A DNA stretch of 63,329 bases, the filler included, from Perkinsus chesapeaki ATCC PRA-425 (Eukaryota > Protista > Perkinsozoa), in assembly GCA_013115145.1 (NCBI GenBank). It is 9 parts of 9 records of this genome, joined end to end, with 100 filler letters (N's around TTAATTAATTAA, not from the genome) between each part and the next. Parts side by side here need not be neighbours in the genome. Positions count along the whole stretch, not along the records: positions 55,928 to 61,369 come from JAAPAO010001159.1; 8 more parts are not named here. One strand, 5' to 3'. Positions 1 through 61,743 of the stretch are shown here, one piece after another. Each line of letters starts with the position of its first letter. The stretch's first letter is position 1. The position numbers and the translations under genes were made by a program. The notes beneath the pieces were generated by a model. It searched no databases, was not told the origin of the DNA, and worked only from the letters and a program-made list of their open reading frames with translations.

Positions 1-1449
1 GGTCTATCCAAGAGCACCTCGGTGAGGTCACTCCGGTGGCTCAATCCGATGTACGCAGAACTGCATCTGTGTACATCGAATTTGATCCGCATTCTTTTCG
101 TCTATGCAAACGACAAAGCTCATCACAGACAATTGCCAACTCAAGAGTCACAAGCTAAAGAGCAGAAAAGTGGGTTCGGTGTAATTGGTTATATATCACA
201 CAGGCGCATCTTCCAGCATTTTCAACAAAGATGTTTGTGCAACAGTACAAAGCGCTATGTATGTGGGTCTGCTACCCCGTGTCTCACTGGCTGCCGATAT
301 TTCATTCATTCACCAAAGTTTATACTCTCCCATTGCAGAGCAAGCCCCTTGATGAACAGGCATCACGCGGCTGGACATTCTGAATCATTCGAGGGGCTTA
401 CACATTTGGTGTCTGAAAGGGACACTTTCAAGTGTTTGATGATTGACAGACTCGGAAACAAAATCCGAGTAGTTATTAATGATAATAAACCTAGTCTTGA
501 GTCTATCGGAAGATGTTCAAGGAAAATTCGCTCCCAAATGCAGGTTCAATACATGAAGATCCTGTAAGTTGGACCGAATCTAATTAAACGATTTAGTCTA
601 AGAGCAGAGTTCTCCCGTCTATAACGCGGTGAAGCTTCGTCTTCTAATTCCTGAGTTCCCGGACCTTTCACGCCATATGGGGGTTGCTATTGGCGGTGAT
701 CCGATTTGATGATTTATTTATGAACCTCCGCACAGTCTCCGCTTCTCTACCCAACTATGATGACCTATTCGATGCTTGTGTACGAAATGGGTGTATCATG
801 TCTCCCCGGTGATGCTGAGAGATTTGTTGATTACCGCCATGCTGCCGCGCAAGGGCCGTAAATGACACTGTCATTATGAAAGTCCCCCCCGCGCCGCCTT
901 CTTTCACGCCCCAATAGGCGTAACCGCACTATTCTCGAAACTGGAACTCGATGCCGAAGTGTTGAACACGAATCATCTCAATCTTTCGTATGATAGCTGT
1001 TGACTGCGTCTGTTTACCTCGTTCGCATAGCGTAGCCTGGCGTACGAGTCTACATCGCTCTGGAACGGTCGGATGCTTACTCGTTCTCTAGGATGTCAGT
1101 ACGAGAGAGGCGGGCGGGGCTTGTTCTTGTCCGACTTGGAGCCTCTGTTGTACCTTAAAGGGAAATGGCAGCGCAGGCGACAAGGTTGAGCATTCTAGAA
1201 TGGTTTCCTATCAAATCAGCACCCATTCCTTACCTGCAAGTCTGGGCCACCTTGTATGTGCTGTTGCAAGAGTTGAAGGTGTCATGAAAGACTCCCCGCG
1301 GTCTTTGGTGCCCCTGGATGGTACGCTATACCGCAAAGACTGCACTCCGAATTCGTCGGTTGTCACAGTAGGCCTATGAGCCGAATAATCAGTCTGAGAA
1401 GTGCGAGAAAAATAACAGGCTGGCATCGACTCCAGAGTCTACTTTTACC

Positions 1450-3400
1450 AAAGCCACGCAGAGCAATTTCTTACTTTCCGTTTGCTAGTAGCTGACAGCT
1501 GCGAATACCGTCGTGGATTGCCAAACTCTGCCCACACTCTTGCCGCTGACTGTTGTGACCTCTGCGCGCTGAACAATGATCCCCGATCCCAGGGTCTTCG
1601 TGCCTCTCCCAGGACCTTACCTAGTAAGGTCATCGAGGCCCGTTGCTGACCGCCGTATAGTTCCGTCGCGCCCTCCTCGACGACCGTCATCGGCCAGATA
1701 TTGTGTTCGGCCCTTCGATCCTAAACGCTTTCAACCTTAGCAAGTACTTCCTTTGCCTTATCCCATCACCTCCCGCCAGCAATTCTGCCATCTGTTCTCG
1801 TAGACCTTCATTTTCCAAGCGTAAATCTGCGTTCCGTTGTGCCATCTGGAGTATGGTCATATTCGCCCTCTCAGTAAGAGCGTTCAGAGCATCGTTGCAA
1901 GGTCGATGAGGACTGAGATGTTGTCAATGCTGAAGCCAGATCTGTCATGTCTTTGATATCGTAAACAGTGACAGCAACCCGATGGAAGCTGTAGAATGAA
2001 ACCTTCCTTATATTGCTGTAACAATAACCGATGCCAGCACATTTCTCTATGTAACGATTTTTTTTGTTCAACCATTACTCAGAGCCTAATTCTAATATCG
2101 CAGTGGTTGATGAGGCATTACAAAGAGCTCACCAAGAGCTTTAAGTTGGTATCTTACTTCACTCGTGACTCTCACGCGCCAAAAAAATATGAGGCGTGGG
2201 CGCTTCTTTTCGCATCACCCTGTATTTGCGTGGGCTTCAATGCTAATAAATCCCATTATCGCACGGGCAAGCAATAGTGCCTCAATTTGGTGCTACAGAA
2301 TCCTTCGCGAGATGTCTATGATGAGCCCTGGTATCCTTTTTGCCTATTTTTACTATCTAGTACTCGGGAAGGTGGATCGTTTCCCCTGATCAATCCTACT
2401 TGGTATCCTGTTCACTCTCAGGTATGGTGGTCGTCGTCTTCTTGAGTCCGCCACGCCCACTCGACAACAGGACATTCTCCAGATTGAGCTTATCAAGAAC
2501 GTTCTTCAGATGTCTCATTTGTTTAATCAACCTAACGCGTACTAAATACGACCCGCTTGCATTCAGTCCCTCACCGTGCCTTATCCTTCCTCTCCTTTTG
2601 TATCTGTTTCATAAGGTCAAGCTCTCCCTTCTCGGTCCTGACGGTAGTCCATCTCGTAGATGTACTTGGTCCGCTGTCGGGTACGCTCGGAAGCGATCGA
2701 TTCCACTTGAGAGCAAAGTCGAAGTATATTGCGCAGCAACGGTTACCTTCTCTCTTGTTCTGATGAGCCCCTCCAAACACTCCTGAATTTCCTTGGCTAT
2801 CGGATCGGTACTCTCTTCTTCAGAGTTGTTTCCAATCTCAGCACATATCCCCCGAAGGCACGATGTGACGGACTAACAGGTGCAAAATAATAAGTGACCC
2901 CAGGAATTCACAAGGTGGGCTCCGGACTCACCTCAAGGTCTTCCTCGGGTAACCTTCGTCCAAGAGAATCATCCTTGATATGAAGACCTGCAGGACCAAC
3001 GAGCTAGAAGCAAGAAGGCCGACGCAGAGCACGTGCCTTGCATGGCCCTCGATGGCTCATCAATGTCGGTGAGGAACTCCGCCTCGGCCAAGTCGTCAAG
3101 GTTCACGTTGCCGAAGAGATCTACCGGCAGGAGGATCAGCGGCGCGTTCCCATCTCGGCAGTTTGTAATTTACCATTTGTGCTATCTTTCCCTGTTTCGG
3201 TCATACAGCAGCTCAGTTGTAGCGGAAGGAGACAGGAAAACAATCTCTCACACAAATCGTTATGTACTCAACTTTGCCTGAATGAATCGAGCAATCAGAT
3301 CTTAGTCAGTGATTGAGAGCGGTATGAGCATCCTGCTGGGCCAGGAGGGCTTGGCCCAGACTGCGAGGCACTCCAGTGACGCTGCGAGCGTGCAAGGTAG
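1450..3400 (-). CDS. Multi-exon gene, coiled-coil-rich protein of unknown function (boundaries approximate)
   Basis: Minus-strand exon-like segments with GT/AG edges, e.g. DLMKQIQKERKDKAR|gtgag followed by LIKQMRHLKNVLDKLNLEN; ALTERANMTILQMAQRNADLRLENEGLREQM; DGNAPLILLPVDLFGNVNLDDLAEAEF. No family recognised. Confidence 0.45.
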
Positions 3401-3626
3401 GGGACTGAGTTGTGCCTTGTCACTACGACATGATTTCGATCACCCAGGCTGTTCTGTTGGTTTTGGATACGTCCACTAAGCAGATTACTCACCACTATTG
3501 TGGAATTCAGGAACTATTGAGAACCTCACACCAAGCCGTCCACGCACACCAAACATGCAGCCCCCCCCCCGGTCAATTGACAACAGTAGAACAGGTACTT
3601 AGTGAAAATTCCAACAGTGGATAGCC

Positions 3627-6600
3627 TCAGCTTTGTTCTCGTGACCAAAGGCAGAAATCCTTGAAGGCAAGCCCCTTGTAGCTGTAGAGCGGAATGTACC
3701 TAATGGATACACTCCGAGCTCGGCAACTGCTCATTTGGTGACCTACATGCTCCGCTGAGGAGACCGCGATGCACCAGCGTCGAGCATGGGCTCGCAAACT
3801 AGCTTCTTCGTGAACTCCACAGGACTCTGCTCGCCAACGAAGAAGTCTACAAAAGCATCGGATTGAGGGAGGCGCTAAATGGATAGAGGATGGGGTTACC
3901 GCACGCCGACGGGTCCCTGTATGTCGAGAGCTCTTCTTTATTCATGTCATTGAATTCTGGGTGAATTTCAGATGTCGTCGTGAAGTGTCTGGGTAGCTGG
4001 CCATGAAACCCGGCTCTGAAACACAGATATTATCAGCACGCATAATAGCATTGAAATTACTGTTGCCCTTTCTTGTTATAAAATTTCTTCACCAAAGGAC
4101 CATATCCCGCAGACTCCTCGATGCTGGGAGATGCGAGAACTAGCAGAAAGTTGATCAGATTTCCTGTCGATTTTCTTTTCTTAGCCATATATCTGGCCCA
4201 CTATACACTAGAGCAAACATACAGGAAATAGGTGATACTGCTTTTACGGATTTCCCGTGATGGGAGCCCTCGACTGCTTAGGGCCTTCGCGGATTGCCCG
4301 CGTACTAGTAGGACATAAAGATAAAGAGATGTTCAGTTTTTACTCATTGGTTTGCAAGTTGATCGAATTAAGTAAATCCGAGACTATCACTGCCAGTCAA
4401 ATCCTTAAAGTGATGCCAGCATAAAGATGCGCAGCGGTAGCTCACTTTGTAAACTCCAACCTCGCTCCCTGTGGCATGAAAAAGTGTGAGTAAGATCGGT
4501 ACCAATCATCACCCATACACACCACAGCTTCCGGCTGCCTCGCAATGATATCGTAACTGGAAGTCCATTGCAATCCATACCGCTCCGCTCACTGCGGCTG
4601 ACCTTTTCTCCCACACCTTGGCTGGTCCGCCGTAATATAAGCGCAACGCCGCTATGCGACTAGCAGAAAGCAGGAGAACGGCGACGACCGCTGCTTTAAT
4701 GCCGTATCGACGGAGCTTCGTGGTGCACGTGAGATGCTTGGACTGCTTAAACCTGTTGAGATTGTGATAAAATTAAAGACAATTGATCCATTCTGTACGC
4801 GTATGATGGGTATGCTGACTCTAAAAAGACCGCTGCACAGGCCACAATACATGGATATATCTGAATAACAATCAACGATGAGATAAACTCCAGCACCTAC
4901 CGGGTAGAGGAAGCGCTCTTCCTTATGTGCTAGTTTCGACATCACCACGAACCAGAATACCTGCAGAAGAAGAAGGCTACATATCCGGAGAGAGCTGTGG
5001 GGGAGGAGGACGACCATGGGGAGGCCTATTGGCAACCATCTGCCAATTTTGTGGTCAGCGAAGTACCACAGGGAAAGATACGAGGCCGGAAAGCAGAGGT
5101 TGAAGTTAAGCAGGCCATTGAGGATATAATAGTACCTACTAATCACTTTATTACCAATATATTACCTCAATTGCAGCACCTCAATACATTTGTATATTAT
5201 NNNNNNNNNNNNNNNNNNNNNNNNNNNNNNNNNNNNNNNNNNNNNNNNNNNNNNNNNNNNNNNNNNNNNNNNNNNNNNNNNNNNNNNNNNNNNNNNNNNT
5301 TTTTACGCCACTTCCTCAATACATTTATATATTATTTTTACGCCACTTCCTCAATACATTTATATATTATTTTTACGCCACTTCCTCAATACATTTATAT
5401 ATTATTTTGATGTCACTTCCTTCTACCCCGTTAAGGGCTTACCAAGGCTCCACTCCATAAAGTTGGGAAAGATTCCTCACAGAAAACCCGAAATTGTAAA
5501 GAGCAATATTCAGTGGAGCTAAAACGAGCTTGCCATAGTAGTGGTAGTCCACAGCAACTGACAAAGGCAATCTGAAACAGCGGTCCGGGAGGCTCTTACT
5601 TATCAGTCCGCAAACCATCGCCAGGCCCAGCAGTCCACGGGAGATAGTGTAGAAAATACCACGAGTGTATCTAACAGTAGCTCCTCAATGGCCTTCTTCA
5701 TCAGTCAACGAGCCTTACATCACCGATGGCACCATTACCAAGTAGATGGCACTGGCGAAGGGCCATGCTGTCGCGAAGGCACCAAATAGGGATACGAGAA
5801 TGCAACCGAAATCATCTGAGGAAAACATATCTCGGGTATGTTAGTAAGAACCTAGTTGAAGTCGCGCAGTCCGTTGCTTAGCGGTTGGCTTAGCTTTTTC
5901 CGTGGAATTCTTATTCAGCACGGAATGCCCATGAAGCAATCCGTGCCGGTGCCTTAAGGAAGGGTTTACAATAGATACTCTCCTTCCTTCTCCATTCCAC
6001 CGAATGGTTTATGGACCGTAAACATGTATTTATTCCGCAGTTCATCAGCAACCCTTACGCTTCTTGAAATGAAGGTAGTTGGCCAGCATAAAACAGCACA
6101 TGAAAAACTGAGACGGTAGGACCGCCGGGGAGGCTTGGAACCTAACGTCGCGTTGATGTGAGTATCTTGTGTCAGTGTTACATCCCAGGAAGGACTATGC
6201 TCAACCAGAGATACAGCGCGGCGGTGGCTTGGCCCCACATGGATCGAATCATCTTGGAGAAGCGATACCTATACAACAACTACGAATCATTCAGATGATG
6301 AATGCCCACAACTCAGATTTGATCCGAAATAGTGACAATGTTACGAAGAAAGAGCGAACTAAAGCTCGCCATAGACTAATGAGTCCTGGTAAGGGACGGA
6401 ACACTACGGCACGGCATGCTTCTGCATGCCCCGACTCCAATGCCCCACGAGCTCTTTGATAGTATTCCCATTCGATTGAGAATCTAGAACTTCGGCAAGA
6501 ATTTTGCAGCTAATGAAATATTGGTACCCAGAGCCATACCGAATACTGCGTACAGGAGCTTAAGTAGCAATATACTCAATAACATTTTATAACAATATGT

Positions 6601-8062
6601 AAAAAAGTTCTACTGCACTTCACCTTTACCAGCTAAGCGTCGTCTCGTCTTCACCCCCACCTACTCGCATGATGCACAGAATGCTGCATTACAAGCCCTA
6701 ACAGCATAGAATACCATCGGCTTGGTAAACCCAGGTATAAGGGAGAATATATGTGCAATAGTGGCATAGATTGAGGTGTAGACGTAAGACCTCAGACCAT
6801 ACTGTGGACTGTATTCCCATGTCTGAAGGGCTGGACGGCCGTAGGACTGACAAGGAGGAGCGGTGTAACATGTGATTAGGAGCAGCCAAAACAACAAGTC
6901 GTTGAGGAGATACACACAGTACGTGTCATCTAGAAATGCGCGCCAAAGGCGGGCAAATTTTTCGCCAGCTAGATCGAATTTCGCCTTATTTCCTTTTCTG
7001 TCGAGTTCTACGACCTCGATTACCCATAAATCCAAGCTGTTTTCGTGCCGGAAGACGCGACGTGCTTTTCCATGGTATATGCAAATGAGGACAGTATTAA
7101 TATACTGATTAGCTATATACAGGACGAGTTCACTCCGAATTGTACTGTCCAATATAATTTACTATATTGCATCAGTGCGATCTTATTTTCCCTTGCAACC
7201 TCTCGATAACAAATCCAAGAGAAGTTTGAAGCATCTTTTCATTCTATTGCACAAGTGTAAGGAACGACTAATGTAGTTTATGGTTTAGCAATATTTCCCG
7301 ACATATCACAGTGAGAAGAGCGGGGAAGATGTACAGTGCAAGGAAGAAGGAGGAGGAGGAGGAGGAGGAGGAGAGGGTAGCAAATGACTACTGTGCCCAC
7401 GAGCCAGTTTACTGCCTTGGCAACGCCCAACAAGTAGTTACATGATTAATAGTATGCAATATGACAAGTAGCTTGTGCGTAAAGTGGAGCTTTATCTTCA
7501 GTAATCCGCAAAGTGAACACTTTTCAGATTTGCATGCATATGTCGTATCTCTCGTATATGTGGTGGTGTAATGAACCATATTGCCATATTTTACAGCCAA
7601 ACTCCAGCTTATAATCGTATAAATTATTTCCACTGTACGACTAGCGACATCATTCACAATTGGAGTCATTTTGTGCGTTTTAATAGAACAAGATTGAAGA
7701 CGTAAATCGGTCGAGTATCCTATTGGGTTATATTGTGTTATCGTTATATCTTCTTCATTGTGAGGATCTTACTGCATTAATACTCAACACAAAGATACTT
7801 GCAATACCACTCTACCTGAATATGTCATTACACATTCAATAAATTTATAAATCTGTGTACAAATGTTCATACTCTACTTACCGCCGCACCGTCTCAATAC
7901 AACTCCATACAGCGCGGCCCCGCTACTCACCTGTAAATGTATTGGTTCCCAATAATTGAATGTCTCATCACAATCATCAATGACAGCATATCTGGCTGCT
8001 AACAATCGAGCCACCAGTAATACGACAGCACCAGTTTTGAACCACCAATCGTGACGAAGCAT
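3627..8062 (-). CDS. ALG9: Alpha-1,2-mannosyltransferase ALG9 (multi-exon)
   Basis: ALG9 motifs occur in the correct order across exons: DDCDETFNYWEPIH (~7930), LQTWEYSPQYGLRSY (~6800), GMFQASPAVLPSQFFM (~6100), AWPFASA (~5760), HKEERFLYP (~4910), VCMGDDWYRSYSHFFMP (~4500), FNDMNKEE (~3940), MLDAGASRS..MYIP; TGA at 3627-3629. Confidence 0.9.
5160..5410. repeat. 35-bp AT-rich minisatellite in an ALG9 intron, spanning an N gap (5201-5299)
   Basis: Unit cgccacttcctcaatacatttatatattattttta at 5306, 5341 and 5376; a related copy lies before the gap. Confidence 0.9.
7348..7373 (+). repeat. (AGG)n microsatellite in an ALG9 intron
   Basis: About 8 tandem AGG units. Confidence 0.85.
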
Positions 8063-8164: not shown

Positions 8165-9818
8165 TCATGCGTTGCTAATAGGGACGTGGACCTCCATCTC
8201 AACACTGTTCCCTTTAAGATTCTCTCGCATTTTCTTCAAGTCATAACGAACGCCATTAACCTGAAACAGCAAGCCTCCTGAGGGACACAACTCGCTGTTA
8301 GCTTACAGCTGTGATGTAGGAGCCTTCCCTCACTTTGACACCAGAGGACTGGGTTTCATTCCACTTGTCTAGGAGCTGTCGACGGACAATGCTTATCACC
8401 TACAGCGAGATTCTACTAACTTAACAGCGAAGACGGTATTAATGTATGCATGAAGTTGTACAATACACCTTCAATGCTCATATTAGAGATCATATGGCTC
8501 AACATTTTTTTATTTTTTCCTGGCTCAAGAAGAGTCATGCTGATGAAACGTGATTGGATGATATATCGCAATATGAGGGATCCAAGCATGCGACACACAA
8601 AATGCATTTTTAAACGACTTCTAATTTGGCAGTCGGTTAATCACGGAATATAACCCCTACAACAGATAAACCGGTAATAACTGCTGTTTTTCATGACCGT
8701 TTCGCCAGATTCAATCAATTCCGAGGCGCGTGTAAGACTGTCTCTGACCACGACAATGACAACATACGAAATATCACACTTCATCGATTACCGCTCTTGA
8801 CCGGTCGGTAATATCACATTCGAAATAATGTGATATTATTGCATACCTCAAGACAAGCAGGCGGCTCTGAGCCGCATTCGCCTGGAGGTGGCGGCTGATT
8901 GACAAACCCAAACTTGTCTCCTTCGATGCTCTTACTCAACTTAACGATAACCATCTTACACAACGGTGCCGTGGGGGGCTAACAGACAAGAGCTTTGTAT
9001 CTCGAAAACGTGCGCCACGAAATTACCAGTGGGTGTTTGTTGTGCTTCGACGGTCCATTCTCAGGAACGTTAGCCTTGACGCCTGGAGTGCTCATCACAC
9101 GAATCGAAAGATTAGGGTCTGGACCTGAGAGCGGCAAATACTTTTGAGGAAGAGCGGAAATCAATTAAGAGTCAGCATCCGCATTGGAGCGTCTTGAAAG
9201 CTGCATTATAGCTACTGCACGATAATATGAAGGCAGCCATAATACAATACCAACATGTAAATAAGATAGATAAATCATAAATCATTTTAAACTACTTTAC
9301 GAAGATCAATCATAAATATCCAGATATCAGTAAATTAGGGCAGAAGAATTACGAGCGGAAGAGTTTCCAATGTTAAATAGTAATAGAGCTGATAATATCG
9401 AATATATCGATACCATAGCTCGTCATTATTATACAAAACATATATCGAGATATAATAAAAATATAAGTTGAATCGAGAAATATTTCGCGAAACTTTGAGC
9501 AGGCTGCTGTTGCCTGCGCATTAGCGAGGAGATGTTCCAATACCCACCTTCGTAGAATGAAGCCATTGTATTTTGTGGAGTCATCGCCGCCGCTGGCGCC
9601 ACACTGGACTGGGCCGACACATAACCCCTCCTGGGCAAAGTCGAGTTTACACTGGCAGCCGCCGACATTGATTCCCTGAGAAGATGGAACCGTCCCGAAT
9701 GCAAGATATTTACACCTTACTTCGCTGAAGAAAACACTTCCTCGGCGATCGTGTCCTCCTCGGCAGGGCCGCACATCGCCCTTGTTGGCGCTGCACAGAT
9801 GGAGAAAATACCCGACAT
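8165..9818 (-). CDS. PDZ-like domain protein (multi-exon)
   Basis: Exons MSGIFSICAAPTRAMCGP..., VIVKLSKSIEGDKFGF..., VISIVRRQLLDKWNETQSSGVKVREGSYITA|VNGVRYDLKKMRENLKGNSVEMEV...NA* joined at canonical GT-AG sites. The pattern matches a PDZ fold (GF loop; I.AVNG). Confidence 0.65.
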
Positions 9819-55827: not shown

Positions 55828-56319
55828 NNNNNNNNNNNNNNNNNNNNNNNNNNNNNNNNNNNNNNNNNNNNTTAATTAATTAANNNNNNNNNNNNNNNNN
55901 NNNNNNNNNNNNNNNNNNNNNNNNNNNTGTCCGGCATGAGAAGTTTGAGTGAGAGTATATACGCGCTCACAAGAGTGTGACATGCGCATGGTGTGATAGT
56001 CGAAGATAACTCGTTATCGGATGTTAAATATCTCTGGAGTGACCAGGGCTTGCTATTCAAGTGGCTGTGAGCATTTGTGTTTCCACTCATAGCGTGTGCG
56101 GTGGTGGGTGCGAACACAGCACACAGGGCGTGCACATTGCGCGCACGTACGCAAAGATACGCGTTCTCACTTCCGGGCTAAGTCATGCTATTACGTTGTA
56201 GTAATCTGATTCTATTATAAGGGTCTACCCATGTGGTTTTTCGGCAATCCTAGCCTCTCAGTTAGGGGAATTCCTCCTCAGTTTTAAGTTTGTGAGTTTA
56301 CGCTGTCCCAATCAGCCAT

Positions 56320-57522
56320 ATGTCCTCAGTCTCCGGTGACAACCTCTCCGCCATTGCCCAGTCCCAGGGCGACGACGCGTCTGTCGCGGTACCTCCCGTG
56401 GAAGGTGAAGACAGCATGTCAGAGGGTACTTCCGTCGACCCTGGTGAAGACATTCCACAGCCGGCCGATATCCCCGTCAACGGGCCCAATGTTGTGGTGG
56501 GTGACGGAGGCCAGGGCGATCGGCCAGCCACTGCTCTCCCAGACGAGGCCATCGAGTTCCTCAATAACACGGTTGGTGGAGTGGCTGCTGAAGATATTGT
56601 TCGTGTCCTGCGCAAGCGGCGCATCACCTCCCCTGCCATGTTCGAGCTCCTAGACGCGGAGGGTTGTGCGCTGTTGTCCGAGGACCTTGAGGACAAAATT
56701 AACACTCTGGGTTTGAGAGCTCTAGGCCGCTTTTATGCCGATAAAAAGGCTAAGAGACGCCGACTGGCTACGGTTCCCAAGGAGAAGGAGTTTGATGCCT
56801 TACTAAGAAGGCTGCAGGACACCTGCGCTGCCAAATATGGTGGTTTCAGGGTTCCCGGTCGCTTCTTACTACCGCCAGCGTTGTTCTCTCGCTTGCAGAA
56901 GGGTGACGAGGTCGACCTCGACCAGATGGTCACGGGTTCGGCTGCTTCCGGTGACACCAACCACAAGCTCACCTTTGATACGGCTTTGAAGACTTTCAGT
57001 ATAGACGAGGTTGGTGGCAAATCGAGGCCACCGCTGTGCCACAGTGCTGGTTTGGTATTGGCCATGGTGAAGTGGGGCCTGTCTGCGTCACTTTTGGGTC
57101 AGTTGGAACCCATCCATGTCTTGTGCTACATGGCCCGTGTCGCAGAAGCCTGCCTCAACTGTTCTAGCGGTATTTCGGTTATGAAGGCCATTGACTTGGA
57201 TCTCCGCACTGAAGCGCGCAGAGGCGCCAGCACGAGCTCTTTGGGCGTGCAGTTGACCCAGGAGTTTGGAGATATTGTTTTGAGACACTCCGCCGCAGGC
57301 CAGGTGGCGGCTTGTTTCTCGTCTCAGTCCAAGTTTGCTGAGAAGGGGAGTGGCCGTATGGCCAACAGAGGCAACCCTAAAGAGCAGATCTGTCGTTACT
57401 ACCCCCTGGGCAGGTGTTTTGCTGGTGACAAGTGCAAGTTCAAGCACCTTCCGAGCGATGCGCCGCAAGGAAGGAATGGCAACAGCATGAAGGACACCGG
57501 CAAGCCCAAATCGGGTAATTAA
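56320..57522 (+). CDS. Gag-like ORF with a C-terminal CCCH zinc finger
   Basis: 400 aa; CRYYPLGRCFAGDKCKFKH (C-x7-C-x5-C-x3-H); lies upstream of the RT ORF. Confidence 0.75.
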   Translation: MSSVSGDNLSAIAQSQGDDASVAVPPVEGEDSMSEGTSVDPGEDIPQPADIPVNGPNVVVGDGGQGDRPATALPDEAIEFLNNTVGGVAAEDIVRVLRKRRITSPAMFELLDAEGCALLSEDLEDKINTLGLRALGRFYADKKAKRRRLATVPKEKEFDALLRRLQDTCAAKYGGFRVPGRFLLPPALFSRLQKGDEVDLDQMVTGSAASGDTNHKLTFDTALKTFSIDEVGGKSRPPLCHSAGLVLAMVKWGLSASLLGQLEPIHVLCYMARVAEACLNCSSGISVMKAIDLDLRTEARRGASTSSLGVQLTQEFGDIVLRHSAAGQVAACFSSQSKFAEKGSGRMANRGNPKEQICRYYPLGRCFAGDKCKFKHLPSDAPQGRNGNSMKDTGKPKSGN

Positions 57523-57693
57523 CGTTTCTCGGAGGAGTGTCCTCCCAGGAGTTACTGGGCCTCTTTCCATGAGTATTTGCGTATGTCGTCTTCGTCGTTT
57601 GCGACGCCGGCTTGGCGTCACGCCAATGGCGTGTCATATCGTGGGCCAATGTGCTAGTTGATCGTTCTTTTCCCGGAGCATTAGCTTCAATCG

Positions 57694-59940
57694 TTGTGTT
57701 ATGCAGTTACGGGAGCGAGCCCCATTGCACGGAGCCGGGAAACACGTGAAACAATGGAGCCGACCCTGCAGGACATCGTTGATACTGCACAGTCACGGGT
57801 TCCGCCTATGCTCGAGGCGGCCAGATGTTTATCCAGCAGGCATAGGCAGGCCAACGGTCTGCTGCAAACCGAGCTGTTTAATGACAATACCTACAAGGAC
57901 GGGGGTTTTAGTGCTCTGCCAACTGCACCGGCGCATAATGAGAGCTCTGACGAAGTTCTAAGGACGGGCACGGCAGTGGCGGTGACGATATTGGAGGAAG
58001 CTGAGACACACGGCCTGCTCCGCTCTTTTCGGGAGGTAAACGGTTCCCCAACTGCAGAGCAGGCTAGTGCCCTTCGGGGAATAGCGGATCGAGTTGGCGA
58101 GAGTTGCAGGACACGTATCGCCGACCTTTTAAAGGTGAATTTGTCGCCACCAAGCAACGGCAACCACATCTACTGTGACCTTTTGCATGCCTTGGCGGTC
58201 GCTTTCAATGATCCAGACGTCGATTTCCCTCTATTATGTAGCCAAGGGCTGCCCCTGGGCATCACGGAAGGGATACCGCCCTGTCCTCTATACCCCACCT
58301 ACCACCCCAAGGCGCAGGAGTCCTATCCAGTCCCTCGTGAGCACCACAATTACAGGTCTATGAAGGATCCCGCCGCCAGGCAGAGTGTCGCGATGACTCT
58401 CGAAGAGGAGGAGCAGCGCGGTTTCATCCGCAAACTATCACCGGCAGAGGCTGCGGATCCTGGTCGGACGTTCACGCCTCGGGCAGCCATTCCGAAAGGC
58501 GACTCGCCGGACGATGGCTTCCGAGTGATCGACGACTTCCTCCGCTCGAACACCAATATGAGAGCTTCGGTGCCCAACACCAACACTCTCCCGGGGGGCA
58601 CGGACTTGAGAAGAATGGTCGGCAGTTTGTGTGACGAGTTCCCCGACGTTGAGTTTCTTCCGTTCAAGCTCGATTTCCAGGCGGCCTACCGCCATCTGGG
58701 CATCAGGCCTTCGGAACGGAGGCACGTTTGCTTCATGCATGAGGCTCCGGATGGCTCGAAGGAATTCTTCGAGAACCTGGCTCTGCCTTTTGGCCTCAAC
58801 AGTTCGGGATATTGGTTTGTCCGTTTTGCGTCACTCGGCCAGCGTTGCATCGTCACAGTGCTCACGGCTATATTGAAGAGCAGGGGTTTGCCTGTCGCCC
58901 GCGGGGGTTTGCAATACGTCGACGATGGTTTTTGGCTTCTTCTGAAGTGCTTTTACTATGAAGCTGCTGTCATAGTGACGATGATGTGGCACCTGCTCGG
59001 GGCCACGGTAAGTTTTCCGAAGCTCCGAGTTGGGGTTGAGATGGTTGACTGCATCGGCATAACGGTGGATCTATCGGACTCCATGCCCGCTTTTTCCATC
59101 AGGGAGGCCAAAGTTCAGAAGCTTGCCGACATGTTGTCTTCCTTGCTTGCGACAGAGAAGATACACATTAAAACCCTTCGCTCGCTTACAGGCAAACTCA
59201 CTCATTACACTCAACTGCGTCTGTTCTTAAGAAGCTACACCCAGCCATTTTACGCTCTTGAGTCTATCATGGCCAAGAAGAACCTATTCGTGGCGACCTG
59301 CCCACGGAGCAGTGAGATAGGCGCAATTGCGCGTTTCTTTTTGGAGCTCGTGTCCGACCCACGCTCGTTGGCACCGGTGGGACCTTTGAGTTATCGCGTG
59401 CGTCTCAAGGCGATCACGGCTACGGTGATGGTGGACGCATCCACGCGCGCCGTGGCGGGGGTGCTTGCGTTGGGCACGTGTGATACGTCCAGTAGCCCCC
59501 TTGCGAGGGTCAGATATTTCCGTCTCGATGTGTCAGTTGATTCTTTGGGGCCTTGGGTTTGTTTGCTCAAGGATCGGGCCATCCCACAGGAGAGCCGCAA
59601 CGTCTCGGCATTCAAGCTGATCGCCGCGTGTCTCGGCTTGAAGGTTTTAGAGAATATTGTTGGCAGTGCGTCGTCGTGCAACGTTGTTATCTACACTGAC
59701 AGTGAGGTGGTTCGTCACATATTGACGCGGTTGTATTCTCGCTCGCCGGGTTTGGCACGGTTATTACGATGTATGGCAAGGACTCTGGCGAGCTTATCGG
59801 CCACCGCTTTCCTTGTTCAACGCGTTTCATCTGAAGAAAACATCATCGCCGATGACCTTTCACGTGGGGGGCTCCTGCCTCTACCTGAGAGTTGGAAGGA
59901 GGTCGAGGTTAGCATGAAGACCATCGCTGATCAGTGGTGA
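57694..59940 (+). CDS. Reverse transcriptase plus RNase H (DIRS-like)
   Basis: FRVIDD, KLDFQAAYRHL, LPFGLNSSG, YVDD, G.L.H; RNase H motifs MVDAS, YTDS, NIIADDLSR. Confidence 0.92.
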   Translation: MCYAVTGASPIARSRETRETMEPTLQDIVDTAQSRVPPMLEAARCLSSRHRQANGLLQTELFNDNTYKDGGFSALPTAPAHNESSDEVLRTGTAVAVTILEEAETHGLLRSFREVNGSPTAEQASALRGIADRVGESCRTRIADLLKVNLSPPSNGNHIYCDLLHALAVAFNDPDVDFPLLCSQGLPLGITEGIPPCPLYPTYHPKAQESYPVPREHHNYRSMKDPAARQSVAMTLEEEEQRGFIRKLSPAEAADPGRTFTPRAAIPKGDSPDDGFRVIDDFLRSNTNMRASVPNTNTLPGGTDLRRMVGSLCDEFPDVEFLPFKLDFQAAYRHLGIRPSERRHVCFMHEAPDGSKEFFENLALPFGLNSSGYWFVRFASLGQRCIVTVLTAILKSRGLPVARGGLQYVDDGFWLLLKCFYYEAAVIVTMMWHLLGATVSFPKLRVGVEMVDCIGITVDLSDSMPAFSIREAKVQKLADMLSSLLATEKIHIKTLRSLTGKLTHYTQLRLFLRSYTQPFYALESIMAKKNLFVATCPRSSEIGAIARFFLELVSDPRSLAPVGPLSYRVRLKAITATVMVDASTRAVAGVLALGTCDTSSSPLARVRYFRLDVSVDSLGPWVCLLKDRAIPQESRNVSAFKLIAACLGLKVLENIVGSASSCNVVIYTDSEVVRHILTRLYSRSPGLARLLRCMARTLASLSATAFLVQRVSSEENIIADDLSRGGLLPLPESWKEVEVSMKTIADQW

Positions 59941-60139
59941 ATGCTGGGCCTTGGATATTATGGCGTTTCTCTTTCTTTTCTAGCGATCCCCTGCATCTTG
60001 CGTTAAAGTGCGACTGGGGACTTGCTGGTAGTACGTACTGTGGGTGGAAGGGGCTCGATTTGTTTCACGAACGAAGAGTAGCACTGACAGCATGCGATGA
60101 TAGTTTTGGCCTTGTAACTATTTTTCCCCTCAACCAAGG

Positions 60140-61207
60140 ATGGCTGCACGTCGAAGTGCGGCTACCGAGTATGTGCGGCAGGCAATCTCTCAGGGTCGCA
60201 ACCTCCATCATGAGGTGAATGACTTCGTTCGCAGCGCTGTGGCGGAGTCTACACGAAAGGGTTACACGGCAGCAGAGAATTTGTATATCAAGATCATCTA
60301 TGGGCGAGACAACATGGAGGAGTCGATCTATCCATTGTCGGGAAACTTGCTCTTGCTGTATATATACGTGATGTCCAAAGTTGGCTATGCCTCCTCCACT
60401 ATCCGGACTTACGTCTGCGGTCTCAAGTCGCGCAACCTAGAGAATGGATTCAGGCTTAGCAAGATCGAAACAGAGAGAATCCGAAGAGCAGTAAAGGCCG
60501 CCGAGAAGCAGGGCGGTACGAGTAGCTCCGGAGGTATAGGTGTGGTCACGCCGAAGCTGGTTCTGCGTCCTGCTCATTTGCGCGCAGCCAGGAACCCGGG
60601 TGCATCGCGAGACCCATGCTGGGTGGCGATGCTCCTATGCGTCTTTGCACTGCTGCGTGCCAGAGAATGCTTGGCGCTACGTCTTGGTGATTTGCGGTTT
60701 TCAGTTCGGGGAGGCATGGACGTTGTGAAGATAGCTATCCGCAAGAGCAAATGCGATCAGGTGGGAAAAGGTGCTCTCCTGACTGTGGGTTGTGCCAAAG
60801 GCTCCAAGCGCCGTCCGTGTGGTGAGCGTTTGTGCCCTGTGCACAACCTGTATCGTTACCTTACTTTGGGTTGCGCTGAGGGCCGGTGGCAGCGATGCAA
60901 GGAAGCACTTGTGTTTGTTGCTCCGGAGCACATGGGGGAGCCTCTCACATATAATGGCTTTCTGCTGGGTGTTAGACGCCTGCTGGGAGGCGTGACCGGC
61001 CATGGCACGGGGGTTACGACACATGCCCTCCGGCGGAGCGAGGCGAACTGGCTGTGGCAGGTCGGGGTTCCCCTATTCAACATACGAGAGTTTGGTCGAT
61101 GGTCGACAAGGGGGACCCTCGAGGACCGATATCTCTCAGGTGCGACGCAGTCGCAGCAGTTTTTGTATTGTGCGGCGGCGTTAGAGGGTCAGTATAAGGG
61201 CATATGA
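60140..61207 (+). CDS. Tyrosine recombinase with an N-terminal SAM-like domain
   Basis: LLRARE (R), IRKSKCDQ.GKG (K), CPV, THALRR (HxxR), GRW, RYL (Y). Confidence 0.92.
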   Translation: MAARRSAATEYVRQAISQGRNLHHEVNDFVRSAVAESTRKGYTAAENLYIKIIYGRDNMEESIYPLSGNLLLLYIYVMSKVGYASSTIRTYVCGLKSRNLENGFRLSKIETERIRRAVKAAEKQGGTSSSGGIGVVTPKLVLRPAHLRAARNPGASRDPCWVAMLLCVFALLRARECLALRLGDLRFSVRGGMDVVKIAIRKSKCDQVGKGALLTVGCAKGSKRRPCGERLCPVHNLYRYLTLGCAEGRWQRCKEALVFVAPEHMGEPLTYNGFLLGVRRLLGGVTGHGTGVTTHALRRSEANWLWQVGVPLFNIREFGRWSTRGTLEDRYLSGATQSQQFLYCAAALEGQYKGI

Positions 61208-61743
61208 CTGCCACGTGCTTCAGTTGGATAGTTGCAGTCAGTGATGCTATAGCATCCTTCATATACTCATGTTTTCGCTAGTGGTCCGACTTGGGAACGA
61301 GGTGTTGTGTTCTTCCGAGTGTTTCTCCGAATCATGTCCAACAGATATATAGAGGTATGAGAACACTGGNNNNNNNNNNNNNNNNNNNNNNNNNNNNNNN
61401 NNNNNNNNNNNNNTTAATTAATTAANNNNNNNNNNNNNNNNNNNNNNNNNNNNNNNNNNNNNNNNNNNNGGCTAATACATGCCAGTCTCATCAGTCTCGT
61501 CTCATGCTCTTATCGCACGCCACATTTGGGCGAGGATCAAATTACATGTGACACGAGACAGATTACGACCTCACATCGGTTTGCACAACGGTTTCAAACC
61601 CGCCATGATCTGAGCCAATAATCTTCATGGTTCTATTCTCGGACGAATGCACAGCATGGAATTGGGGCGGAATGTACGGAAATACCGTATAATCTTCTTG
61701 GCGGTTCCTATGGTTGACCACGTGTAGTATGACACTTTACTGT

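Follow-up and report, generated by a model that had tools for sequence, protein, structure and literature searches.

We analysed a 63,329-nucleotide (nt) stretch of DNA from Perkinsus chesapeaki ATCC PRA-425 (the window; all coordinates count along the whole joined stretch), in which one piece, positions 55928–61369 from JAAPAO010001159.1, is a nearly full-length copy of a tyrosine-recombinase retrotransposon. Three open reading frames (ORFs) follow one another on its plus strand—gag, with a CCCH zinc finger; pol, with reverse transcriptase (RT) plus RNase H; and a tyrosine recombinase (YR), encoded here instead of a DDE integrase. An earlier note on this DNA had interpreted both spacers between these ORFs as introns. 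Comparison with related elements leads us to a different view of the two, in which the gag–pol spacer is very likely an intron and a spliced fusion of pol to YR is unlikely.

Organization and class of the element

All top matches in a protein search were Perkinsus gene models, the nearest being a P. chesapeaki "C3H1-type domain-containing protein" at 95% identity, and 79–93% of sampled words from the piece were present in P. chesapeaki DNA runs. The features of the piece are listed below, where a slash within a sequence marks a splice point and L002 is a sister copy (96% identical, 5'-truncated).

55928–55996, no strand assigned: flank outside the element, a very high-copy repeat (word depth 9,000–27,000 versus ~140 within the element)
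55997–56242, plus strand: A1 terminal repeat, the left-hand one among the split direct repeats (matches L002 A1, 3782–3920, and A2, 8368–8613)
56243–56319, plus strand: 5' leader with a GTGAGT donor-like hexamer at 56292–56297
56320–57522, plus strand: gag ORF (from the ORF list), 400 amino acids (aa) when unspliced, ending ...KSGN and a TAA stop at 57520 that lies inside TCG G/GTAATTAA
57391–57447, plus strand: gag CCCH zinc finger (Pfam zf-CCCH families, E 1e-4 to 6e-3, below gathering cut-offs)
57515–57706, plus strand: proposed intron 1, 192 nt, phase 1 (donor TCGG/GTAATT, acceptor TGTGTTATGCAG/TT)
57707–59940, plus strand: pol exon, comprising a conserved N-terminal region, RT and RNase H (motif alignment with nine relatives)
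59941–60139, plus strand: pol–YR spacer (intron 2 of the earlier note is 59937–60138), with a pyrimidine tract and AG at 60120–60138
60140–61207, plus strand: tyrosine recombinase ORF, 355 aa, with its own ATG (Pfam Phage_integrase, E 1.6e-5, just under the gathering score)
61294–61369, plus strand: first part of the B1 repeat, truncated at the end of the piece (matches both L002 B copies, 8219–8294 and 8636–8711)

The gag C-terminus, ...SGN and stop, is common to the window element and P. olseni. The pol frame opens at 57685/57694, and the ORF at 57694–59940 encodes 748 aa from its first possible start, closing with a TGA at 59938–59940 inside CAG TG/GTGAAT. A Pfam search of the window pol was blank, RVT_1 being detected only in relatives, and both enzymatic domains were instead called from motifs and relatives: RT from YVDD (58915), and RNase H from DAS (59431), TDSE (59692) and ADD (59845), all aligned with relatives. 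The YR ORF is preceded by ...CCCCTCAACCAAG/G ATG, which places an acceptor-like site one base before the start codon. Its catalytic residues—R (60650 block), K (60740 block), HxxR (61022), W (61094 block) and Y (61121 block)—are conserved in an alignment with eight relatives and in place in the window copy. In nine relatives, the 96% sister copy among them, the catalytic Glu of RNase H is invariant; the window has Lys at this place (AAG, 59614–59616). Because of this replacement, the window copy, in which all three ORFs are open, may be non-autonomous and dependent on other copies in trans.

Terminal structure was established from related copies together with the window. In the sister copy, an A repeat lies upstream of gag and B1-A2-B2 downstream of YR, and the same plan of split direct repeats is found in a complete P. 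olseni element (L010). The arrangement A1-[ORFs]-B1A2B2 is thus complete in L002 and L010, and the window piece holds only A1 and the start of B1; one DNA contig links 56242 to 61297 with 25 nt between them, which corresponds to the A2–B2 junction. Both repeat pairs of L010 are 100% identical (1801–1939 = 7223–7361; 7016–7165 = 7380–7529) and its gag, pol and YR are all intact, which suggests a very recent insertion and makes this element a good candidate for activity. On the left side of the window copy, many DNA contigs end at 56000–56004 with differing continuations, the high-copy repeat abutting the insertion.

We found no terminal inverted repeats in the piece (55928–61369) and no Pfam match to a methyltransferase in pol (E<=0.1), where there is also no room for one, pol ending ~20 aa past the last RNase H motif. 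Given split direct repeats and no methyltransferase, the element is Ngaro-like rather than DIRS1-like by structural criteria (PMC4157794, PMC8547959), a class assigned from structural features, which are known to be homoplastic (PMC4157794). The label "DIRS-like" given earlier to this element is therefore apt at the level of the order but not in the narrower sense of DIRS1-like.

A conserved candidate intron between gag and pol

The coordinates and arithmetic with which the earlier note joined all three ORFs are exact: 56320–57514 + 57707–59936 + 60139–61207 gives 1195+2230+1069 = 4494 nt, and the fused frame of 1497 aa has no internal stop, with junction peptides GKPKSVTGASP and TIADQWMAARR. 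Taken by itself, an in-frame splice layout in a single sequence is not above chance. When donor and acceptor zones were shuffled, at least one in-frame GT..AG solution arose in 67% of trials for gag–pol and in 53% for pol–YR, and the real sequence offers six and four such solutions, respectively. With chance pairs this common, RNA or a comparison with relatives is needed to decide. A further detail, absent from the earlier note, is that gag and pol lie in the same frame in the window, with three in-frame stops between them.

For the comparison, six further Perkinsus elements were added via public gene models, with model introns recovered by exact back-translation; together with the window element they form a set of seven that spans pol identities of 24–64% and at least four deep lineages. 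The window and P. olseni elements, 59% identical in pol, share conserved blocks at the two ends of the spacer, ATCGG/GTAATTRA and GTTGxGTTxTxxAG/xTACGGGxGC, while its interior is unalignable and its length changes from 192 to 176 nt. As a result of this 16-nt change, the frame relation of gag and pol differs between the two: the shared frame of the window is replaced in P. olseni by different frames, with stops in all three.

The same signals recur throughout the set. A G/GTA donor in phase 1 lies two to seven codons upstream of the gag stop in all seven elements, and a pyrimidine-rich YAG acceptor, also in phase 1, precedes pol in all seven. The intervening spacers are 134–270 nt long (0 or 2 mod 3) and T-rich, with 26–37% T and 14–19% A (33% and 16% in the window). 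Every frame of these spacers is interrupted by stops, and in three of the seven elements the spacer length changes the frame. In four elements no phase other than 1 can work, because a single AG follows the last stop in the pol frame. Phase-1 GTA makes up 0.9% of codons in these elements, which corresponds to P ~0.06 per element within the last seven codons; the chance of the observed pattern is ~1e-5 for four independent lineages and 4e-9 for seven.

Pol itself provides a second line of evidence. In all seven elements its ORF is intact and conservation of the coding sequence begins right at the acceptor; the first in-frame Met of five elements comes only at residue 176–221, within conserved sequence. 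Lacking a Met for ~200 codons, pol in these five cannot start alone and has to be connected to gag, a task that translational recoding cannot accomplish given the stops in every frame and the variable frame offset. The boundaries of 57515–57706 (G/GTAATT ... pyrimidine-rich CAG) and its 192 nt also fit host signals and the published length range. Three unambiguous introns of a neighbouring host gene, PHF5, have GTAC, GTAG and GTAA donors and YAG acceptors, and Perkinsus introns are described as GT/AG, 39–1622 bp, mostly <100 bp (PMC3101222). Given the 100% identical repeats of L010, this intron-bearing layout belongs to a young, presumably active element.

The conserved signals, position and phase across relatives support the earlier claim that removal of 57515–57706 fuses gag to pol, and we regard this as very likely a real intron. 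Alignment of copies, which the earlier note had proposed as a check, gave a divided answer: the GT/AG positions and phase of the gag–pol junction are conserved around a diverged interior, whereas those of the pol–YR junction are not.

The annotation of the host gene used here for reference deserves a separate comment. The annotated PHF5 model (110 aa; L010 7628–8116, minus strand) was not reproducible with one intron; its length matches, and its exon structure looks wrong. The conserved PHF5 protein needs three short introns of 50–56 nt, with donors GTACTG, GTAGGT and GTAATA.

The pol–YR spacer and the start of YR

The spacer between pol and YR is poorly conserved among relatives, and no conserved donor is found at the pol stop. 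The proposal that removal of 59937–60138 fuses pol to YR is not supported by the P. olseni and P. marinus relatives, which conserve neither the donor nor the phase. In both P. olseni copies, which come from different isolates and one of which is young, the YR acceptor is CAG/ATG in phase 0, and the only phase-0 donors, GTCGAT, GTCAAC and GTTCGG, lie inside conserved codons, so that their use would delete conserved residues. No in-frame pol–YR solution exists in P. marinus L004, and there is one, implausible, in L009, a P. marinus-like Logan contig. The donor proposed for the window, GTGAAT, also departs from the GTA of all gag donors and of the three host introns examined.

Variation at the junction itself points the same way. 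Position 60139 is G in the window and A in L002, and A accounts for about half of the depth at this site in two DNA data sets (85/187 and 113/214). Combined with the donor of the earlier note, this substitution turns the junction codon into TGA. YR, by contrast with the sequence upstream in its frame, which is not conserved, has a start Met that is conserved in the window, L010, L004, L009 and L008, and a pyrimidine tract and AG lie 0–31 nt before the YR ATG in the same five elements. The single Gag-Pol-YR polyprotein of the earlier note is not supported for this family, given the stop at the junction in L002 and about half of the depth and the conserved Met of YR. A GT does overlap the pol stop in all three close relatives (G TGA, G TAG and G TAG). 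On this comparative sequence evidence, a splice fusion of pol to YR appears unlikely for the family of the window element.

A different use of the acceptor can be envisaged. Both P. marinus and P. chesapeaki are known to use spliced-leader trans-splicing (PMC2868825, PMC3101222), and the position of the acceptor-like site just before the YR ATG suggests an acceptor of the kind expected to create a separate YR mRNA. A second candidate signal is a GTGAGT in the 5' leader upstream of the gag ATG, present in the window (56292–56297) and in L010 (1974–1979) and not seen in the other families. The L010 leader has two pyrimidine-rich CAG sites between it and the gag ATG, and the hexamer could be a leader donor or belong to a small leader intron. 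As a leader donor it could lead to a retrovirus-like subgenomic mRNA for YR; GTGAGT is not general, however, and donor-like hexamers also occur here and there in the coding regions.

Within this spacer, a block, GTTTTGGC(C)TTGTAA, just 5' of the YR ATG is common to the window (60105–60119) and L009 (~1772–1786). Outside that block, the rest of the spacer is unalignable between the two.

Proposed expression strategy and alternatives

From the anatomy of the element, the conservation of the gag–pol signals and their phase, the missing pol start in relatives and the non-conservation of a pol–YR fusion, we infer how splicing, its efficiency and the expression of YR would fit together. The reading that we favour, with a probability of roughly 0.6, is that of a Ngaro-like element consisting of A1, leader, gag, a 192-nt intron, pol, a spacer of ~200 nt, YR and B1, in which gag and pol are joined by splicing and YR is expressed separately. 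The full-length, intron-retaining transcript would have two uses, as the genomic RNA and as the message for a Gag-only product, which would end two codons past the donor (...KSGN and stop). In a fraction of transcripts the spliceosome would remove 57515–57706 (donor G/GTAATT, acceptor CAG/TT, phase 1) to yield a Gag-Pol fusion, and splicing efficiency would set the ratio of Gag to Gag-Pol, the role played by frameshifting or readthrough in other retroelements. YR would most likely be unfused to Pol, its translation starting at its own conserved AUG on an RNA that is processed separately and made either by spliced-leader trans-splicing or by a subgenomic cis-splice from an upstream donor.

Several observations weigh against this reading. 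Two small RNA runs labelled P. chesapeaki contain nothing of the element, and when a fragment of the P. olseni Gag-Pol model that spans the junction was used as a protein query, the matches were genomic gene models only, with no transcript-derived protein among them. If spliced RNA were reverse-transcribed, intron-less DNA copies might occasionally be expected; DNA contigs retain both the gag–pol and the pol–YR spacer, and intron-less copies were not seen in contigs of two DNA data sets, which is weak evidence given that contigs drop rare variants. At 134–270 nt, intron 1 is longer than most Perkinsus introns (<100 bp; PMC3101222). One TGA (2721–2723) is all that separates gag from pol in L008, where both share a frame and readthrough could serve. 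For the proposed route of YR expression, a relict spliced-leader sequence was not found in the piece, although the query, an approximate dinoflagellate leader pattern, makes this a weak test. Finally, public gene models showing these introns are unreliable; that of L011, a decayed P. chesapeaki copy, contains six introns.

For this reason, and with a different micro-exon placed inside the gag–pol spacer in the model of the sister copy L002, we rejected public gene models as evidence of splicing. In the L011 model (82–5786), one of the six introns duplicates its flanking sequence, and annotations of this kind bridge defects with invented introns.

One alternative, that of the earlier note, takes both spacers as introns, so that fully spliced RNA encodes one 1497-aa Gag-Pol-YR protein and retention sets the ratios of Gag, Gag-Pol and Gag-Pol-YR. 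The open fused frame, with TG/G giving Trp at the second junction, and the GT overlapping the pol stop in three close relatives agree with it, and further evidence for it comes from distant Perkinsus families. Four of these share a phase-1 acceptor, YCAG/GTC, before YR (L003 2920, L005 6012, L006 3957, L007 3557), and in L005 YR lacks a start codon and must accordingly be produced as a fusion. A lone TAG (2845–2847) separates pol from YR in L003, both being in one frame, and readthrough of it would give the same fusion as splicing. A distant relative on an ENA metagenome contig (L012, 122–4675) carries an uninterrupted ORF of 1517 aa with pol-like (281–850) and YR-like (1074–1434) parts.

Donors at the end of pol are less consistent in these families. 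Candidates in L003 and L005 are non-GTA (GTCCGG and GTTGAA); L006 and L007 have GTAG-type donors 15–26 codons before the pol stop, whose use would delete residues conserved across families (L006), and L007 has no phase-1 donor near the pol stop. The acceptor before YR has the phase of the gag donor in the distant families, so skipping of pol could also give an in-frame Gag-YR, which appears as compatible with the data there as Gag-Pol-YR. Nearer to the window, a three-part polyprotein is opposed by the poor solutions in P. olseni, the lack of any in L004 and the one implausible solution in L009; by a GTGAAT donor where all gag donors and the three host introns have GTA; by the A at 60139 (in L002 and, in two DNA data sets, at about half of the depth), which gives TGA; by a YR Met that is conserved where the upstream YR-frame sequence is not; and by the 53% of shuffles that yield an in-frame pair by chance. 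We consider this alternative rather improbable.

A second alternative dispenses with splicing: the ORFs would be expressed separately or through reinitiation, internal initiation, non-AUG starts or internal promoters, and the introns of the models would be gene-finder artefacts. Gene finders do invent introns, as in the decayed L011, and in-frame GT..AG pairs are common by chance; a Met occurs in the window pol 16 codons past the acceptor, only one in-frame stop parts gag from pol in L008, and neither spliced RNA nor an intron-less DNA copy has been seen. Against this stand donors and acceptors that keep their sequence, position and phase in lineages between which neither gag ends nor spacer interiors can be aligned. 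Readthrough or a single frameshift is ruled out by the stops in every frame together with a frame-shifting length in three of the seven elements, and pol conservation starts exactly at the acceptor, with no Met for ~200 codons in five of the seven. An account without splicing therefore seems to us quite improbable.

A third alternative, in which one donor at the end of gag is paired with either of two acceptors to make Gag-Pol and Gag-YR, perhaps as an ancestral state from which the YR AUG of the window's clade is a secondary departure, draws on the phase-1 gag donor of all seven elements, the phase-1-compatible YR acceptors of L003, L005, L006, L007 and L008, and pol-end donors that are non-GTA (L003, L005), far upstream (L006, L007) or lacking in phase 1 near the stop (L007), but it is highly improbable, as the YR acceptor of the window is in phase 2, so that a gag-to-YR joint is out of frame and ends after 27 codons, L010 and L004 would likewise have this joint out of frame, a Pol-YR splice accounts equally for the shared phase, and L003, L005 and L007 are related and amount to few independent observations.

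Beyond the reading that we favour for the window element, with spliced gag–pol and a separate YR, a genus-wide version can be formulated, in which Ngaro-like Perkinsus elements would use the host spliceosome instead of recoding, with one strong phase-1 donor a few codons short of the gag stop and phase-1 acceptors ahead of pol and, in several families, of YR, retention or alternative splicing would yield Gag, Gag-Pol, and Gag-Pol-YR or Gag-YR, and only unspliced RNA would be copied. In this general form we hold it to be doubtful.

Relationship to known retroelements

The element resembles the Ngaro plan (Goodwin and Poulter 2004, as summarised in PMC4157794 and PMC8547959) in the order of gag, RT/RNase H pol and YR, in having no methyltransferase, and in the arrangement A1-[ORFs]-B1A2B2 with internal repeats downstream of YR. 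It differs in that the gag finger of the Perkinsus element is CCCH, in that gag and pol are split by a conserved putative intron instead of being contiguous, overlapping or frameshifted, and in its host, a perkinsid alveolate. DIRS1, PAT, TOC3 and kangaroo are likewise tyrosine-recombinase retrotransposons, and PAT-like elements also have split direct repeats; the DIRS group, unlike the Perkinsus element, has a methyltransferase domain, and DIRS1-like elements have inverted terminal repeats and an internal complementary region, neither of which is present here. An intron in transcripts has been reported for kangaroo-1 of Volvox (Duncan et al. 2002, cited in PMC1636488).

The closest functional analogue is Ogre, a plant Ty3/gypsy long terminal repeat (LTR) element, of which one account states that "Ogre splices between ORFs" (PMC3735527, citing Steinbauerova et al. 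2008). The parallel is an intron between two ORFs that, once removed from some of the transcripts, restores the frame of a polyprotein, although this splicing is shown experimentally for Ogre and inferred for Perkinsus. The resemblance is one of mechanism only: LTRs, a protease, a DDE integrase and a plant host are features of Ogre, and none applies here. In copia and BARE1, splicing of the element's own transcript sets the ratio of Gag to Pol (PMC3735527). These elements and retroviral env share with the Perkinsus element the principle that splicing of the transcript controls which proteins are made and in what ratio, but the direction is opposite, since their splicing removes pol to give a Gag-only or env mRNA, whereas here splicing would be needed for Pol and unspliced RNA would give Gag only.

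In view of these precedents, the novelty first claimed for the layout was too broad: Ogre splicing joins ORFs, an intron is reported for kangaroo-1, and public Perkinsus gene models already draw introns in these elements. Our literature searches found no report of a gag–pol intron in DIRS or Ngaro elements, the searchable surveys describing contiguous, overlapping or frameshifted ORFs, and no published description of Perkinsus YR elements beyond a list entry. As far as these searches show, the conserved gag–pol intron of perkinsid Ngaro-like elements is implicit in public gene models and apparently undescribed.

Implications

Retroelements need much more Gag than Pol, and the usual means to this end are frameshifting, readthrough and protein degradation. 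To our knowledge, splicing that is required for Pol occurs in very few elements, an example being Ogre of legumes. If our reading is correct, the splicing solution would have arisen, and been stably kept, in a second, unrelated order of retroelements, and in a protist, which raises the question of how only unspliced RNA gets reverse-transcribed. Annotation of Perkinsus genomes is affected as well, since these elements currently appear as intron-bearing host genes labelled "C3H1-type domain-containing". They seem young, the L010 repeats being 100% identical, and they are possible tools in an organism for which transfection is under development. Should the genus-wide version also hold, Perkinsus would harbour a splicing-programmed polyprotein system in tyrosine-recombinase retroelements, kept through at least four deep lineages.

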